Shown: piece by piece, positions 2,755 through 62,782 of the stretch
Layout: each line of letters begins with the position of its first letter
How positions within the stretch are numbered: the stretch's first letter is position 1
Assembly (NCBI GenBank): GCA_976226885.1
Contig: OZ320317.1
Span: forward strand, 78,492,001 to 78,556,000
Direction: 5' to 3'
Source of the DNA: Iphione sp. A-MEVVRFRX5
Taxonomy: Eukaryota
Length of the DNA: 64,000 nt
Position numbers and translations under genes: made by a program
Notes under the pieces: model-generated
The model's database searches: none
What the model saw: the letters and a program-made list of their open reading frames with translations, nothing else
What the model was told of the DNA's origin: nothing

Positions 2755-3032
2755 NNNNNNNNNNNNNNNNNNNNNNNNNNNNNNNNNNNNNNNNNNNNNN
2801 NNNNNNNNNNNNNNNNNNNNNNNNNNNNNNNNNNNNNNNNNNNNNNNNNNNNNNNNNNNNNNNNNNNNNNNNNNNNNNNNNNNNNNNNNNNNNNNNNNNN
2901 NNNNNNNNNNNNNNNNNNNNNNNNNNNNNNNNNNNNNNNNNNNNNNNNNNNNNNNNNNNNNNNNNNNNNNNNNNNNNNNNNNNNNNNNNNNNNNNNNNNN
3001 NNNNNNNNNNNNNNNNNNNNNNNNNNNNNNNN
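2755..3032. other. Assembly gap (278 N)
   Basis: Run of N. Confidence 1.
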
Positions 3033-8697: not shown

Positions 8698-9332
8698 TTA
8701 CGTCACAATGCCCATGTAGCGTGGATAGAGCAGGATGAAGACGGCTGATGCCGTCATGCCAATGAAGAGCATCCAGAAGAAAAGCCGATCTAGTACGTGG
8801 GCGAGCTCATGCCAGTCCTGCGAGTAGTCCGCCTCGGCCTCCTCGTCGCCCGAGCTGGTTCCGCCGCCGCCGCCACCGCCGACGCCGCCGCCGCTCCCGC
8901 CGCCGCCCCCGCCAGGGCCACCGCTGACCATCGCCTCTCCGCACGAGCACAGGTTGTGGCCGTCGCAGGCGGCATTCAGCGCCGTCGTGTCCTTGACGGG
9001 CACGACGCGCGGGCCGTTGACGGGCTGGCGCGTGCCCACCGTCAAGCTGAGCAGCTCCATGTCGTCGACAACGCCGTTGCCTTCAGGGTTGAGCTGCTTC
9101 TTCTTCATGCGGCCCACCTTCTTGGAGTAGAGCTTGGCGCGCGCTGCACTGCCCCTACTACCGCCGCCCGACTGGCTGCGCACACAGACGAAGCGCGACA
9201 GGTAGGTGAGCACCAGCTTCTTGAGCCACGGCGGCACTGGGTAGCGCGCCCCGCGATGATGAACGTTGAGCACGAGCACGGTGAGGCAGATGGATATTGT
9301 GCCGAGTGTCATGGTGGCTGTCAGGTAGATCA
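8698..9332 (-). CDS. Exon 6 (terminal, 635 nt): TM3, intracellular loop with MX and MA helices, TM4, stop
   Basis: Acceptor TTCCGCAG|TG (G+TG = Val). Contains TM3 ...LTVLVLNVHHR, MX PPWLKKLVL, MA QDWHELAHVLDRLFFW and TM4. TAA at 8700-8698. Confidence 0.96.
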
Positions 9333-12085
9333 CTGCGGAAAGAGCACATCGTTAACTCGGAGGGTATGGGGAAAGCAGGACGAAGGGAAAAAATCACCGG
9401 TTGATTCGGACTTCCGGTTATCTCGAAGTTTCGTCGGACAAGTATGACTAGGGTAACCATACTGTAAATAGGGCACTGGTAGTCTATGCAATATATGAGC
9501 GTATTTCGAGGGAACAAAGTTGACAAAAATTGCCTGGTTTATTACTACAATCAGAGGTACCTATTATTGGGCATTTAATTTGGAAAAAAAACTGGCCAAA
9601 TTGTTGGAAGTTCCGTCAACTTCGGAATATCCGGCACTCTACTACAAAACAACCACGAAGCGTTATATATTTAGCAACAGTCTTAAACGAAACCTAAAAG
9701 AGAGAGGTGTCCATTGGCCATACCAGAGAACACCCCTACTCCTAGGACACCATGTAGTCTCCATTTGTTCAAACAAACATGCAGTGCTATTGTACGGTTT
9801 TGCGGAGCCATTGGTTTCTTGAGAACAGAGTTTTAATGAGAGATACTTTATTTTATAAAAAAAATATATAAATATGAAGAAAGATATTAGACTAAGTATA
9901 AAACGCGAAATACAGAGGTAATTTGAAAGTATAAATCAATACTGTCCCAGGCTTAGATATAGAACCAAAATAAAACTAAAGACCAGTAATGATTTTCCGT
10001 AAGATTAACTGTTCTCGGAGAAAATATTCCCGCAATTAGTGTTCTTATATTCAATACGTATTGACCTAGCCATAAATTGAGGAATACATAACAAATCTAC
10101 ATCAGGGGTTATCTAAATTTTCCGAATATAGTACGGGTATTTCGGGGCAGAAGACTGACTGGACTTGGTTGCTTTTCACTAAGACATTCAGGTCTGTTAT
10201 CAACAAATGTTTCTCCAATAGCCAAAAGAGTGCTCATAACGTAGAAGGGTAAATATCCTTGGGCCAAGGAATGTTTAACACGTATCCGTTTCCAACGCAA
10301 ACGCATCTTGTCACAGTATTGCATTACCAGCCGGTCCTCTATGAATGGATGTATCATTCATATGTACAGGTTGGTGACGCGAATGGATGTGTTTGCATTG
10401 TACCAGTTGGTCCAGAACGGGTTATCACGCAAACAGACGCATGAAGCCACAGAGAAGCATTGAGAAGCACAGCTGGTATCCACGTGGCATTATATAGCCG
10501 TGCTTCTCTACAGAGGACTTCACGGTAATGGATCCGTTGGAATGAAAATTACTACGGATTCATGTGAAATCCTCTTGTGAGAGCGTAATGAATCTTCCAT
10601 CTCTTCACGTATCAGGTCGTTACTCACTGAACGAATGAGTCAGCATTTTGCACAAGTGGTATTTACAACAGGCAGTATAGACGCGCACACATCACACAAA
10701 ACGAAGTCATATCGGCCCATAGCGAGTGTTAGTGCATTTCAGCCATTTCAGCCACTTATACATACGTGTGTATACAGAAATATGATCACAATGCTGCTTG
10801 TCGTGACCAGGTGTCAGCACTAGTTAGAAAATGGCAATCATATTCTGCAGTGGTATGCAAGAAACGCTGCAGGAAAATATTCATTTTCAGATTATTATGA
10901 TAGAGGAGAAAAACTGTCAGTGACTTAATATTTTTCCTTGAGGTATTGGGTATTGCAGGATGTTGTTTTGCATAATAGAAACAAAAATACTTTTAAAATT
11001 TCCACGATAAATATCAATATTAACAGTTTGTACAAAATTGTCTAAAAAATGTACTTCCCTCTGTCAGAATGGTCTGATGGAATCTAAGGACATCGTGTCA
11101 AAGATAGGAATAAACCATACATACTTGTGTCATGTAGTGGAAAGAAGGCTAAGCACACCTCAAGAGGTCAGAGGTCATACTTAGGATATTGATCGAACTG
11201 AGCGTATCCTCACTGTGCTGGATTACCATCGAAAGCGAAGGGTTGGCAATGGTGTAGGCTTTGAGAGGCTGATGAGTATGGATGATGTGATAACTGCGGT
11301 TGCTGATATCCTGTAGCCTAACTCTTCATTATGAGGCATTGCCCTATCTTCCGGCCTGCTGATTATGGTTGCTTTAAACTCTAGAGGTCTACAGCCATCA
11401 TTGGTGCTTTATCTAATTGAAAATCAGCTGTATAATGACTACTGCTGTTCTTAGACCTAACGTTAGAGACTGCAGCTACATCACGATGAAGCTATTTAAG
11501 CAGTGTCGCAAGCGCGAAATGTGCCGAAGCCATCCATTAGCATGAGATTAAAAAAGTAACTGACAAGAAATTGGAAATGATATTTGTAAATACGCATTAT
11601 ACAATTATGTTCTACTTACGGATTCGCCGCCTAAATGAAATACGTCATAAAGGTGCCGCGGCTGCTATGCTTCCAGGAAACTGGTATGATACCATCCTCG
11701 AATTCATACAATTTCAGCAATGTACTGTAGATTGCATACCGAGCCAGGAAGCAGGCAATAAAATAAATATCTAAGCACTAACAATTAGTGAAGAAAGATC
11801 ATAATTACATGCTCTCTAAATATCTAAGCTTAAGTGCCTATTCTCGTTCAAATTAAAGCGTGACTTTCTTTGTATTGCGTGACGAGAAAGAGCCCACTTG
11901 AGGGGGTCTTTGTCACCTACAAAGGAGTCAAAGAAATGCGATTAATTTAGTGCAAAGCTTTGAGAAAAGCTATCAACCCACGACTAAAGTGGTGGGAGAA
12001 GGGAGCGGGATGGGGGGCTGCTCCTGAAGCCCATCCACCTGTTTAAAGGGACGTGTGGGGGGCGGTTGGTGCGAGCTGTACTAAC

Positions 12086-12624
12086 CCATCAGAGGTATGG
12101 CGAGCGAGGTGCGGGGAATATTGTCGGCAATCATCAGCAGGAAGACAGTGAAGGCTAGCAGTACGGATATGCCGAGAGAGATCTTCTCGCCGGCATCGGG
12201 CGGCAGAAAGAAGCCGATCATTATGAGTACGGAGAGCATGACACAGGGCAGCACAATGTTCATCATGTAGAACTTGTAGCGGCGCTTCAGATGTAGCGTG
12301 AACACCACATGGGGGTAGCCTTTGCCCGGACAGCAATCCAGCACAGTGATGTTCCACTCGGTCGACGTGCCGTAGACGTGCCACTCGCCGTTGAGCCTAA
12401 AATCATGCGTGCTGATCTCGGACGACGTGTTGGTGATGTTCATCTTGGACGAATAGTAGGAGTAGGCCCCAATGAGCAGCGGACAGTGCTGCGTGTCGAA
12501 GGGGAAGTAGGTGATGTCGATGTCGCACGTCGTCCTGAAGATGCCGCCTGGTTCCCAGTGCAGCATGCCGTTACTCGAGAGCAGCACGCGGATACGCTCA
12601 AAGTCTGGTATGAGCTCGTCAGCC
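12086..12624 (-). CDS. Exon 5 (539 nt): loop E, Cys-loop, loops B/F/C, TM1, TM2 and TM2-TM3 linker
   Basis: Acceptor TCTTTCCCCAG|G, donor ATGG|GTTAGT. Contains the Cys-loop CDIDITYFPFDTQHC (C-x13-C), loop C LDCCPGKGY, pre-TM1 LKRR, and PPDAGEKISLGISVLLAFTVFLLMIADNIP. Confidence 0.97.
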
Positions 12625-13392
12625 CTGGGGAAAGACAAGGCGAAAACCTTCATGAAGGGAAGGAAAGTGGGTATGGGAGCGGAGACTAAAGGGAAATAAG
12701 GAGGAAGAGCGGGCGAAATAGAAGAAGCGAATGAGAGGGAGAGAGTTACGAAGAGTATGAAGAAGTAAAAGAGTTTGAAGACACGAGCGGAGGAGGAAAA
12801 GAAGAAGGGGTATAGAGAGGGATGAGGACAGAGAGAAAGCGAAAAAAAACTAGAGACAGACTGAGAGACCACGTAGAATACACCGGTGGAGCGAAAGCGA
12901 AAAGCAGTTGGGGATAGACAAACAGGAAGAACAGGGCAATCATGGGGGTCGAGGGAATTAGGGCTGAAACCAAGAAGATTGCCACGGACGAGGGTTTGGG
13001 AGGATAGATGGCAAAGACAGACCTGATGATACACGTAGGACATCTCAGTTCGTACTTTCTTGAATCCAGCTTGCTGAAACGATGACTAGAAACACTTGCA
13101 AAAATAAATCAATATCCTAGATACTTGTCCAATCCTTCCAATTACAAAATATATGTGGCCAAAGAACGAAACATTTTTAAATACTCGGTCCCGTGAACCA
13201 CGAAGCGTGTAATGAATATATTCAATGAGAAAGCTGCCACGCCATATGAAAAAAATCTAATCTACTACTGTGCCATGTTAAACGTCTCACACGCACCGCC
13301 GCCTTTTTTTTTAATCGTGGCAATCAATGCACACTTTAAACAAGGTCCAGTGAGTCGGAAAGAGCGTTTCCAGAGACCAACAATTAACCTAC

Positions 13393-13502
13393 CCATTCAT
13401 GACAGCGAGCTCTGGTAGCCATATCTTGTCTGCCTTGATAATTATATCTGTGAGGTTACCGAAGTCCTCCGGGTCCCATTTGAGACGGTCGTCCTTCCAC
13501 TC
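13393..13502 (-). CDS. Exon 4 (110 nt), loop A: EWKDDRLKWDPEDFGNLTDIIIKADKIWLPELAVMN(G)
   Basis: Acceptor CCGACAG|GAG, donor GG|GTAGGT, phase 0-2. Same length as the 110-nt nAChR exon, with W.D..L.W.P..(F/Y)G and IW.P(D/E) motifs. Not in the ORF track. Confidence 0.96.
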
Positions 13503-13641
13503 CTGTCGGATGGTGTAGATAACATACACAAGATTTAGAACTAGCACGAACTGTAACCCTCCGCCCCCCTTCTTCCGCGGTTGCCTTGAACGTTAACTTT
13601 TATGTATAGTTTTAGTTCTAGATTAATGTTTTCAGGATTTA

Positions 13642-14114
13642 GAACCGGTTTCCATACTGTTGTTTCTGCATAAATTGGATTTGCATCATGTGAAAATCAC
13701 CCATTGTCAGATGAAAAAAAATCATGCAAATGCAGGGGGGTATAGTTTACTTGTGTCTGTGTTATGTGAATGTATTATATGTAGAAATTTGCAAAAAAAA
13801 AATAATGGAAATATGTCGAATGTCCCAAATGTTTCTGGAAATGTCCTTTGTACATCGTTTTCACTTGATGTACTCTCTCACACACAGCCTCCTTTTAACC
13901 CTATCTGCAATACACCTGTACTACTCATGTAATTGTATGTGTTTGCATGAAATCTATGAGCATCATCCAAATATGAACGATGCAAACACAATGCAACTGC
14001 AAACACAAACACACTAATGCAATGCAGGTATGGAAACATGTCCACTGGGCAGGCTTGGTTCATTAGAAAGGTAATGCAAATGGAATTTGTTAATGCAAGT
14101 ATGGAAACTGGCCC
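13642..14114. mobile_element. PIF/Harbinger-type MITE in intron 3
   Basis: Imperfect TIR GAACCGGTTTCCATACT / AGTATGGAAACTGGCCC, with TTA on both flanks (13639-13641, 14115-14117) and a TGCA-rich interior. Confidence 0.7.
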
Positions 14115-14415
14115 TTACAGATTAAGGTTTGTTTTTCAGTTTCACAGAACAGAATGAATGTTACAGAATACCAGATTGTTTGAATGAGCTTTCCTGACAA
14201 ACACGACAATTTGAGAACTGTACAAACATATTATAACAGAATATTTTTAACTATGTTGAACCAATTCTTATAAGATTTTTTTGGTGAAATGACAACTGAA
14301 AGGAATTCAACGTCATATTATCCTTTTATGATTTTTCGAATCCTTTTTATAATACCACTGCTTGTTTTGACCTTTTTAGCAATGTGCGCACATGGGCATC
14401 TACAACAGTACTTAC

Positions 14416-14460
14416 AGCGATTACTAGACCTGTAGTAGTCAAGACCTGACTCCTCTCGTC
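14416..14460 (-). CDS. Exon 3 (45 nt), loop D: DERSQVLTTTGLVIA
   Basis: Acceptor TGTCTGTCCTTGCAG|GAC, donor GCT|GTAAGT, phase 0-0. Same length as the 45-nt DEKNQVLTT exon of vertebrate nAChR genes. Not in the ORF track. Confidence 0.95.
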
Positions 14461-16579
14461 CTGCAAGGACAGACATAAGAGGAATGGGTCAATACTACGA
14501 CGTACATCATAGAAACAGATAGAGGACGAACAACAGATGCTGGGGCAAATAAAAAGCCTTCGTCAAGCGACATTCAATTTTATCCTGTTTATGAGGTACA
14601 TGCTACATATGATTATCTTTTCTTCTTTTGTAATCAGCAGGCTAACACTCACAGGCGATGAGATAGAGGTACATCGGTTCATCATATTAAACACGACATC
14701 AGTCGTAGCAGTAGCTGCTAACTCCCTGCACCCCTTCCATCTTTCCTTTATCAAATTGAATCAAAAGTGACGTTTCGTTAGTTAGTAGAGAGCGGGTGGA
14801 AAATGTCCAGATTGTTGCATTAAATCCCCGTTCTCGATGATAGTAGTACGCAGACCACGCCATCTGGCGACATGATACTATAGGACTCGGGAGCGGGGCA
14901 CGGCCCGGAGGGGTGGAGGCTGTTCCTGTAACGAGGCTAGCGGGTGGAGTAAGCGCTGCAGATCCCCTGGCGACTGCCCCTAATAACACCTGCTTCTACA
15001 TGGCGGGCGAGTAGTCGAAGCTGGCCGTAACGATGTACGGACAAGCTAAGGACTTTCTATGGAGAGCGAGAGGGAGAGCGAAAGGGAGCCAATATGAATG
15101 ACGGCAGGGTGGGATGAAGGTCGTACTGAGATGGCCGAGTGTTTCTTCTCCCCCAGGTTGAAAGCTATGATATCCATCTCCCTCTTCGCCCCCGGCGGCG
15201 TGTTAGAGGCAGTAAATACGATTAGTCTGGAAAGGTCGACCGGCCGGACAAGTGCACCTACTAAGATTTAGGTCTATACAATTGACGTGGACATACACTC
15301 AACTGTAAGCTTACTGCTGCCTTTTCCATCATTTCAAGAAATGGCGGCTGCGCAATAAAACTAGCGGGGAATTCTTTCGTGCTGTATATGCAATCTGAAT
15401 TGTACTGCTTGTAGTCAGCAAGGGGTCACCGTTGGCTCGTATAATTCCCCTCGCATAATGCAAAGCTAATACAGGCTGTATTCTCCCAGCCTCCTGAATT
15501 ATTGATTTACTATTGAAGCATTGTGCCTATAGGTAGAGCTATTTTTCAGAAGCAGTCTGATGTATTCTGCTAAGTTGATATTCCGTAATATAACTTGTGC
15601 ATATTTACAAAAGAAGAAAATGATGCCTTTATGTAATCCTCTTTGTAATATCTGAAAACTATCTTCAAATGAAAAACTGTTGAATATACACAAAGTATGA
15701 TGATGCATTAAGCTAAGGCATTAATGCTTGTGATCCCTATGCTCTTTACCTGTGGATCCACTAATTGTCTCCTGGTAGCACATATAAGTTTGTTCATTGC
15801 ATTGTAGAGGGAGGAGCATGACTACCGTATATGAAGACGAAAAAATAAAGACAAAACCCCAGTAGCTCATAGGATGGCAGGGAAAATAGAAAAAGGAGAT
15901 TGCAGGGAAGTGGAGTCTTGCGCCACAGTGAAGGATACCTGAGCAAATATTCGACTGCTCGAACACGAGCACTGCTACTACCTCTCACGCCCCTCCAATC
16001 TGCAAGGCTGATTGCTTATCGGCCCTCCAACCCATACAATCCAATCTGTGAGATTGGTGAAGGGATCAATAACCAATGACCACACAGATTTCCTCCGACA
16101 GCACTCCTTTTGCAGGCAGTGTTGGGTCCAACTACCTCGGGTTATTACGTCAGAGCTCCCCGGACGCTAGCTAAAAAGAGTCGATGCTATCTTGGGCTAT
16201 TTATCCTATCTTGACGTCTCTGACCTGCCAGTATTGAATCTCTCCCAAAAGCTGCCTTCAGACGTGAATGGCCGTGTTCTGAAAGGTGATAAAATTATAT
16301 ACGTTTGGTTCAAGAATACCTTCATTGCTACTGTCAATTGATACTGAGCTTTGCCGTACGGTACTCCATACAACTTACATTTATATACAGCAACATTCGA
16401 CGGATTAATTTTACTCCTGTGCTTTTGGGTCAGATTTGAAGCCGTGGTCAGTGCAACAGTTGTAGTGGCAGTCCCGTCGTATTATCTCTGTTAAAACCTT
16501 AATTGATAGTATTAAAGGACTCGTAAAATCTAGCGTCCGATGCTCTCTTTGCAAGAATCAGCATTCGGCCTACTACCTC

Positions 16580-17046
16580 TGACCCTACACAGCAGACCCT
16601 ACGTCTTACCCCCATATAACAGACCCTACCTGTGACCCCAACACAGCAGACCCTACTTCTTTCCCCACATAACAGACCTTACCTGTGACCCCAACACAGC
16701 AGACCCTTCTTCTTACCCCCACATAACAGACTCTACCTGTAACCCCCACACAGCAGACCCTACTTCTTACCCCCACATAACAGACTCTACCTGTGACCCC
16801 AACACAGCAGACCCTACTTCTTACCCCCACATAACAGACCCTACCTGTGACCCCCACACAGCAGACCATACTTCTTACCCTCACTTAGCACACCCTACCT
16901 GTGACCCCCACACAGCAGATCCTACTTCTTACTCCCATATAGCAGACCCTACCTGTGACCCCCACACAGCAGACCCTACTTCTTACCCGCACACAGCAGA
17001 CCCTACCTCTGACCCCCCCAAAACAGATCCTACCTCTGAACTGCCC
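16580..17046. repeat. Minisatellite, 54-bp unit built from two 27-bp subunits, about 8.5 copies
   Basis: CAGCAGACCCTAC recurs at 16590, 16644 and onward. Produces the repetitive RVCYVGVRS/RVCCVGVTG pseudo-ORFs. Confidence 0.95.
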
Positions 17047-26349: not shown

Positions 26350-26495
26350 CAAGCCATGGATTCTTAGAAGAACGAAGTCGACGGAGACAACAACGGGCTT
26401 GCTAGTGTCCATCACGGCTCTGGCGACAGGATCATACGCTCGAAACAGGTACGCTAATAATCTCTCCTCGTGGGACATGTTCCGGTGGGAGCTCC
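26350..26495 (-). CDS. Exon 2 (146 nt), N-terminal helix and beta1: (G)SSHRNMSHEERLLAYLFRAYDPVARAVMDTSKPVVVSVDFVLLRIHGL
   Basis: Acceptor TGCTTCTCTTTGTAG|GG and donor TTG|GTGAGT. Matches the Cys-loop N-terminal pattern E.RL...LF..Y....R.V.....V.V. Confidence 0.95.
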
Positions 26496-62712: not shown

Positions 62713-62782
62713 CTTTATTCCAGGCTTGTTGTACACAGGCTAGGACTACGATAGCCTGAAGAACTCGCGTAAAGCAGGTCAT
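62713..62782 (-). CDS. Candidate coding exon 1 (signal peptide) of the nAChR-alpha-like gene: MTCFTRVLQAIVVLACVQQAWNK(G)
   Basis: GCCATG start at 62782-62780 with an in-frame TAA upstream. Basic n-region and hydrophobic h-region. Ends in a consensus phase-1 donor AAAG|GTAAGT, matching the phase-1 acceptor of exon 2 (G+GG = Gly). Linkage across 36 kb is inferred. Confidence 0.65.

Follow-up and report, generated by a model that had tools for sequence, protein, structure and literature searches.

The window analysed here, a 64,000-nucleotide stretch of the 1.18 Gb genome assembly of Iphione sp. A-MEVVRFRX5 (contig C11, OZ320317.1, 78.49-78.56 Mb), carries on its minus strand a gene for a subunit of the nicotinic acetylcholine receptor (nAChR) family. 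Its predicted product is a working subunit of a pentameric ligand-gated channel that is selective for cations. From its sequence, the canonical aromatic box for acetylcholine (ACh) is expected to be unable to form on either face of the subunit. We give roughly an even chance to the reading that the protein is a structural or accessory subunit, which would occupy the non-agonist-binding positions of a heteropentamer.

The binding pocket and the gene model

The canonical ACh site is built from Tyr93, Trp149, Tyr190 and Tyr198 on the principal face and from Trp55 on the complementary face. When exon 5 of the window gene is aligned with human alpha7 by phmmer, the loop B motif FGSWSYGG stands opposite IGAYSYYS, which replaces Trp149 with Tyr. 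In loop C, RFYECCK-EPYPDV stands opposite TVLDCCPGKGYPHV, so that Tyr190 becomes Leu while the Cys pair and Tyr198 are kept. The other two loops pair without gaps in a MAFFT alignment with canonical vertebrate and invertebrate subunits. Here, TTNVWL of loop D lies opposite TTTGLV (Trp55 to Leu), and WLPDIVLYN of loop A lies opposite WLPELAVMN (Tyr93 to Met). Because the phmmer and MAFFT alignments pair the residues in this way, all four replacements, and both of the features that were retained, are correctly assigned. They are the same ones that an earlier note on this DNA had proposed from manual alignment, and all motifs and codon coordinates quoted there are present in the sequence.

The principal face of the window gene thus reads Met, Tyr, Leu, Tyr, with Tyr198 alone unchanged, and Leu (codon 14427-14425) takes the place of Trp55 on the complementary face. 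The vicinal Cys pair of loop C (12335-12330), which formally defines an alpha-type subunit, is present. In loop E, His and Glu occupy the positions of alpha7 Gln117 and Leu119. The description of the box as "dismantled" in the earlier note is overstated for loop B, where the change from Trp to Tyr keeps an aromatic ring.

The gene comprises six exons, including a candidate exon 1. Its features are as follows:

41898-41955, minus strand: candidate exon 1a, MRPKGYGIFHLSLIAILAR plus 1 nt; begins with ATG, encodes a signal-peptide-like hydrophobic stretch, fits the phase of exon 2 and ends in the donor GAG/GTGAGT; gives a protein of 510 aa.
62713-62782, minus strand: candidate exon 1b, MTCFTRVLQAIVVLACVQQAWNK plus 1 nt; donor AAG/GTAAGT; gives a protein of 514 aa.
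26350-26495, minus strand: exon 2 (146 nt), N-terminal helix and beta1 strand, ending in HEERLLAYLFRAYDPVARAVMDTSKPVVVSVDFVLLRIHGL; found by tblastn with the Capitella and Helobdella orthologues at 72-75% identity, with an AG acceptor and a GTGAGT donor.
14416-14460, minus strand: exon 3 (45 nt), DERSQVLTTTGLVIA, loop D; Leu codon 14427-14425 at the Trp55 position; the same peptide occurs in Helobdella and in contigs L017 and L020.
13393-13502, minus strand: exon 4 (110 nt), EWKDDRLKWDPEDFGNLTDIIIKADKIWLPELAVMNG, loop A; Met codon 13400-13398 at the Tyr93 position; Pfam PF02931, E 8.7e-10.
12086-12624, minus strand: exon 5 (539 nt), loop E (LHWEPGG), Cys-loop, loops B, F and C, M1, M2 and the M2-M3 linker; PF02931, E 1.2e-21; PF02932, E 3.4e-20; human alpha7, E 3.9e-42.
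12483-12527, minus strand: Cys-loop CDIDITYFPFDTQHC, C-x13-C with FPFD, from the sequence and the human alpha7 alignment.
12462-12464, minus strand: loop B Tyr codon at the Trp149 position; Tyr in 16 of 16 orthologues, Trp in 24 of 24 sequences of the paralogue groups B-D (see below).
12309-12344, minus strand: loop C VLDCCPGKGYPH; Leu codon 12341-12339 at Tyr190, vicinal Cys-Cys 12335-12330, Tyr198 present.
12114-12191, minus strand: M2 pore lining GEKISLGISVLLAFTVFLLMIADNIP, with Glu -1', Leu 9' and Asp 20' by alignment with human alpha7; kept in nearly all sequences of groups A-D.
8698-9332, minus strand: exon 6, M3, long intracellular loop with a poly-Gly run, amphipathic helix, M4 and stop (8700-8698); PF02932, E 4.8e-12.

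All introns that could be defined are of the GT-AG type, and the reading frame is open. The 45-nt and 110-nt exons are the classic nAChR exons 3 and 4. The first exon is left between two candidates because none of the orthologue sequences at hand reaches the N-terminus; both candidates match in phase, signal-peptide character and donor consensus. The 514-aa protein of the earlier note is obtained with exon 1b, while exon 1a shortens it to 510 aa.

The domain content identifies the family. Pfam places the ligand-binding domain (PF02931) on exons 4-5, followed by the transmembrane domain (PF02932) on exons 5-6. Together with the Cys-loop and its FPFD motif, this is the architecture of the pentameric ligand-gated channel superfamily. 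The M2 segment GEKISLGISVLLAFTVFLLMIAD, with its GEK motif, Leu 9' and outer acidic ring, is alpha7-like and belongs to the cationic branch formed by the nAChR family. The alignment with human alpha7 further shows that the pre-M1 Arg-Arg and the M2-M3 linker are conserved. When exon 5 was compared by phmmer with proteins of solved structure, nAChR subunits made up all of the best 60 matches. Human alpha7 (e.g. 8c9x, 7koo) was at the top and shares with the window gene the fold, the domain order, the FPFD Cys-loop, the Cys pair, Tyr198 and a near-identical M2 (GEKISLGI.VLL..TVF). Alpha7, however, is a homomeric ACh receptor with a full box (Tyr93, Trp149, Tyr188/195 in its own numbering, and Trp55), whereas the window gene has Met, Tyr, Leu and Leu at four of these positions.

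No other long open frame in the 64-kb window is convincingly coding, and tblastn found no second copy of exon 4 there. A 217-aa, Ala/Arg-rich open frame at 8794-9444 on the plus strand runs antisense to exon 6; it most likely reflects the high GC content of the coding strand and does not represent a gene. The exon 6 region, which encodes the poly-Gly run, has the highest GC content in the window (0.51). Intron 2 contains a minisatellite at 16573-17039 with a 27-nt unit (17.4 copies, 74% matches), which can also be described by a 54-nt unit (8.6 copies, 89%) and gives rise to long spurious open frames on both strands. Two runs of N are present, at 2755-3032 (278 bases) and at 40057-40184 (128 bases); the second falls within intron 1 for either exon 1 candidate.

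Conservation and history of the pocket

A maximum-likelihood tree of 90 rows (LG+C20) was computed for the exon 5 region. The window gene and 15 further sequences form an orthogroup, which we call group A (16 rows, support 100/100). Its stem branch has a length of 0.65 and is followed by tight conservation. Exon 5 of the window gene is 77-92% identical to the other 15 sequences. Group A is nested in a fully supported clade of 41 rows, together with three paralogue groups, B, C and D, and a divergent copy from the same genome (L003). A six-row group is sister to this clade, and the combined clade of 47 rows holds no named non-annelid sequence.

Wherever a close relative is named, it is an annelid (Paralvinella, Capitella, Helobdella or Dimorphilus). 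Over the whole protein, the window gene is 64% identical to its Capitella and 60% identical to its Helobdella counterpart. Outside the annelids, identity to the Capitella orthologue is at most 33% (arthropods, molluscs, nemerteans, echinoderms, vertebrates), and the vertebrate subunits alpha3, alpha4 and beta1 share about 30% of the whole protein with the window gene. By word-based searches, the group A orthogroup thus so far appears to be confined to annelids. In the miniaturised genome of Dimorphilus gyrociliatus, only members of groups B and C were seen among the matches (P0018, P0027) and none of group A; the group A subunit may be dispensable in this species, or it may have been missed through the length filter of the search. 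Three group A fragments that run past exon 5 (P0001, P0008, P0013) continue into the intron and are therefore genomic contigs, not transcripts.

Within group A the altered pocket is fixed. Tyr in loop B and Leu in loop C occur in all 16 sequences, Met in loop A in the six examined (the window gene and five orthologues), and Leu in loop D in all five reliable ones (the window gene and four orthologues). The sampling of loops A and D was widened by three orthologue contigs: two share the exon 3 peptide, the third has TTTGLIMA, and loop A is WLPELAVMN or WLPEIAVMN. The Capitella gene model P0010 (CAPTEDRAFT_104243) has TTTAGYLQEW in loop D, as opposed to TTTGLVIAEW or TTTGLIMAEW in the window gene and the four orthologues. 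This difference is probably not real and would stem from a mis-called exon 3 donor in the annotation.

Comparison with the paralogues and the sister group orders the changes as follows:

Loop D (Trp55): sister group Leu or His; groups B-D Leu; group A Leu.
Loop A (Tyr93): sister group Ile; groups B-D Met or Ile; group A Met.
Loop C (Tyr190): sister group Tyr or Phe; groups B-D Leu (Ile in P0039); group A Leu.
Loop B (Trp149): sister group Trp; groups B-D Trp (24 of 24); group A Tyr (16 of 16).

Relative to canonical outgroups, the box was lost in three steps: Trp55 and Tyr93 went first, followed by Tyr190 and, in group A only, by Trp149. The change from Trp149 to Tyr is the sole clean group-specific switch of a pocket residue in exon 5. 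The loop E motif (H/R)WEPG is common to the whole 47-row clade. Within group A, no part of the domain varies more than the tip of loop C, both in sequence and in length. The Cys pair has disappeared from three of the 16 group A sequences (P0012, P0014, P0016), which are not mutual nearest relatives; it is present in all 20 sequences of groups B and C.

The genome holds a single copy of each of groups A-D and one divergent extra copy, and group A is one-to-one across annelids. All five genes lie on the minus strand of contig C11 within 0.6 Mb, with A at 78.50, D at 78.71, the extra copy at 78.83, C at 78.97 and B at 79.09 Mb. The paralogue groups to which these loci (L001-L004, L016) belong already existed before Capitella, Helobdella and Dimorphilus diverged. 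In the group C gene at 78.97 Mb, the equivalent of exon 5 is divided over three exons.

We estimated the ratio of nonsynonymous to synonymous substitution rates (dN/dS, omega) for exon 5 in all 28 pairwise comparisons of eight orthologues. With dN of 0.07-0.19, pS of 0.63-0.89 and dS of at least 1.4 (saturated or nearly so), omega was about 0.1 or less in every pair. This value is to be read as an upper bound only, as synonymous sites have reached saturation even between proteins that are 92% identical, and GC content at third codon positions differs between near relatives. As omega is low across all pairs, purifying selection on the gene is strong, and its non-canonical residues are fixed and of ancestral origin. 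Exon 5 itself (12087-12623) differs strongly in composition between close lineages: third-position GC is 0.79 in the window gene versus 0.52-0.55 in its two nearest relatives, L013 and L014, whose proteins are 92% and 90% identical to it.

These data bear directly on the possibility that the gene is a decaying or unexpressed duplicate, whose odd residues would reflect relaxed constraint. Two observations would fit such a history, namely that no RNA run was listed for exon 5 or for the 5.8-kb stretch from exon 3 to exon 6, and that exon 1 is a candidate only. Against it stand the open frame and the canonical splice sites, the 77-92% identity of exon 5 across annelids despite saturated synonymous sites with omega of about 0.1 or less, and the fact that the pocket residues are the same in all orthologues. 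We consider decay extremely improbable and reject the gene's being a pseudogene on these grounds, in agreement with the earlier note, which had seen an intact frame with all splice sites and no obvious decay. That note had also named canonical orthologues next to a copy under relaxed selection as a finding that would speak against its reading. Instead, the orthologues share the altered residues and are under purifying selection.

Role of the subunit in a pentamer

The question arises of what a subunit with such a pocket does in a receptor. In the reading we favour, it would fill a non-agonist-binding position, as muscle beta1 or neuronal alpha5/beta3 do in vertebrates, and would contribute to the assembly, the gating and the pore of the channel. 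Its likeliest partners would be the linked paralogues B, C and D, which could provide the agonist-binding principal faces because they keep Trp149, Tyr198 and the Cys pair. Alternatively, canonical alpha subunits may serve as partners. What we infer is that the subunit assembles into heteromers, which partners it has there, and that it binds no agonist itself.

The closest parallel is found in vertebrate muscle beta1. In five amniote sequences, this subunit has Met at the Tyr93 position, Tyr or Phe at Trp149 and Tyr at Trp55, while the pore and the gating elements are conserved, as they are in the window gene. Muscle beta1 takes part in no agonist site. It differs from the window gene in that it has no Cys pair and a shortened loop C, and it is not orthologous, falling into another clade of the tree. 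The likeness between group A and beta1 must therefore be convergent. A second parallel is offered by alpha5, which keeps the Cys pair, lacks key binding tyrosines and takes the non-binding fifth position; its gene is clustered with those of co-assembling subunits (CHRNA5-A3-B4). Like alpha5, the window gene encodes a non-canonical subunit with a Cys pair and is clustered with paralogues. Alpha5 and beta3 are, however, not orthologous to it. In addition, the paralogues clustered with the window gene are themselves non-canonical, and their co-assembly with it is conjectural. The single copy and the one-to-one orthology across annelids speak for a constant physiological function rather than for membership of a sensory family.

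Several observations weigh against a structural role. Loop D and the pocket residues outside the tip of loop C (Met, Tyr, Leu and GY.HV) are invariant, which would equally suit a remodelled site. The Cys pair is kept in most orthologues, unlike in beta1. The candidate partners B-D also lack Tyr93, Tyr190 and Trp55, so that the cluster contains no canonical ACh site at all. Finally, gene linkage is weak evidence of co-assembly.

The first of these points leads to the most serious alternative, to which we assign a distinctly smaller probability than to a structural role: the remodelled pocket itself may bind a ligand other than ACh, such as a small amine, choline, betaine or a hydrophobic molecule. 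The subunit would then gate the channel, either on its own in a homomer or as a ligand-binding partner within a heteromer. Met, Tyr, Leu and Tyr in the pocket, together with Leu in loop D, are fixed under strong purifying selection. The Tyr in loop B retains an aromatic ring that is capable of a cation-pi contact, and GABA-rho and glycine receptors make such a contact through a Tyr or Phe in loop B. The His and Glu of loop E, at the positions of alpha7 Gln117 and Leu119, also count in favour of this reading. On the other hand, a ligand-capping loop would not usually have so variable a tip as loop C has here, or lose its Cys pair three times within the orthogroup, and the substitution pattern is that of a known non-binding subunit, beta1. 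Moreover, the gene has remained single-copy and conserved and lacks the expansion and diversification of sensory receptors. The earlier note had left the choice between a receptor for a new ligand and a structural subunit that kept the Cys pair. The gene is indeed an orphan without a canonical box, and the beta1-like pattern, the variable loop C, the loss of the Cys pair and the linked paralogues shift the balance towards the structural role.

It is also conceivable, but in our judgement unlikely, that ACh is still bound with low affinity or in an atypical mode at one face of the subunit in a heteromer, in which case it would be a divergent but otherwise ordinary nAChR subunit. It retains Tyr198 and the Cys pair, loop B is still aromatic, and the gating and pore elements are wholly nAChR-like. 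Non-canonical pockets bind ACh in some pentameric receptors, and the nematode ACh-gated chloride channels provide a precedent. However, aliphatic residues occupy three of the five box positions, on both faces, and Trp149, the main cation-pi partner for ACh, was replaced specifically in group A.

A structural role for the group A subunit can be extended to the cluster as a whole. The five genes (A-D and the divergent copy) might encode an annelid-specific heteromeric cation channel for a transmitter other than ACh, in which group A would be the beta1-like structural subunit and the stepwise loss of the box would record the switch of ligand. We put this forward as a speculation of rather low probability.

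Place among the nicotinic-like receptors of lophotrochozoans

The earlier note had compared the gene to the chemotactile receptors of cephalopods. These receptors (CRT1, CRB1) are nAChR-derived cation channels without the ACh motifs, and ACh elicits no response from them (PMC10338036, PMC11526382). They form lineage-specific expansions, with up to 26 members in Octopus bimaculoides, and their pocket is under diversifying selection (PMC11526382). All named members of the clade described here are annelid sequences. Group A has one copy per genome, omega of about 0.1 or less and invariant pocket residues, and no cephalopod chemotactile receptor was found among the best 120 matches to the Capitella orthologue. 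Because the window gene is single-copy and under purifying selection, with one-to-one orthologues, the analogy fits poorly, as far as the receptors can be judged by their published description.

A closer case, within annelids, is Alpo4 of Alvinella pompejana, an nAChR-like orphan with a solved structure and a His in loop E, which responds to neither ACh nor serotonin (PMC10338036). A missing accessory subunit has been raised as one reason for this silence (PMC10338036). Like Alpo4, the window gene is an annelid orphan from the lophotrochozoan expansion and has a His in loop E. Alpo4 keeps F103, W159, Y199, Y205 and W65, lacks the Cys pair and is phylogenetically isolated (PMC10338036). By this description, it shows the inverse of the pattern in the window gene, which in contrast has one-to-one annelid orthologues.

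Annelids and molluscs are known to have an expanded set of nAChR genes (Jiao et al. 2019, PMC6896357), and the at least 141 exon-level matches to exon 5 in this genome fit this expansion. In the main text of that study, terms for binding residues were not found, and the orthologue accessions are absent from those supplements of the Alpo4 paper that were examined (PMC10338036). Our literature searches returned no published description of the group A orthogroup, its cluster or an ordered loss of the box, and no functional study of the orthogroup.

Taken together, the window gene is a real and well-conserved but fairly ordinary orphan among the divergent nAChR-like subunits of lophotrochozoans. 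As such it enlarges a known group by one more member and does not establish a new kind of system. Lophotrochozoan genomes hold about a hundred or more nAChR-like genes, hardly any of which has a known ligand or role. Group A offers a tractable entry into this repertoire, being single-copy, conserved across annelids, clustered with paralogues that retain different subsets of the box residues, and open to an ordering of its residue losses. If the group A protein is a structural subunit, its co-expression may be needed to de-orphanise its neighbours, a requirement that has also been considered for Alpo4. Should it bind a ligand itself, the nicotinic family would gain a conserved example of ligand switching outside the sensory receptors.

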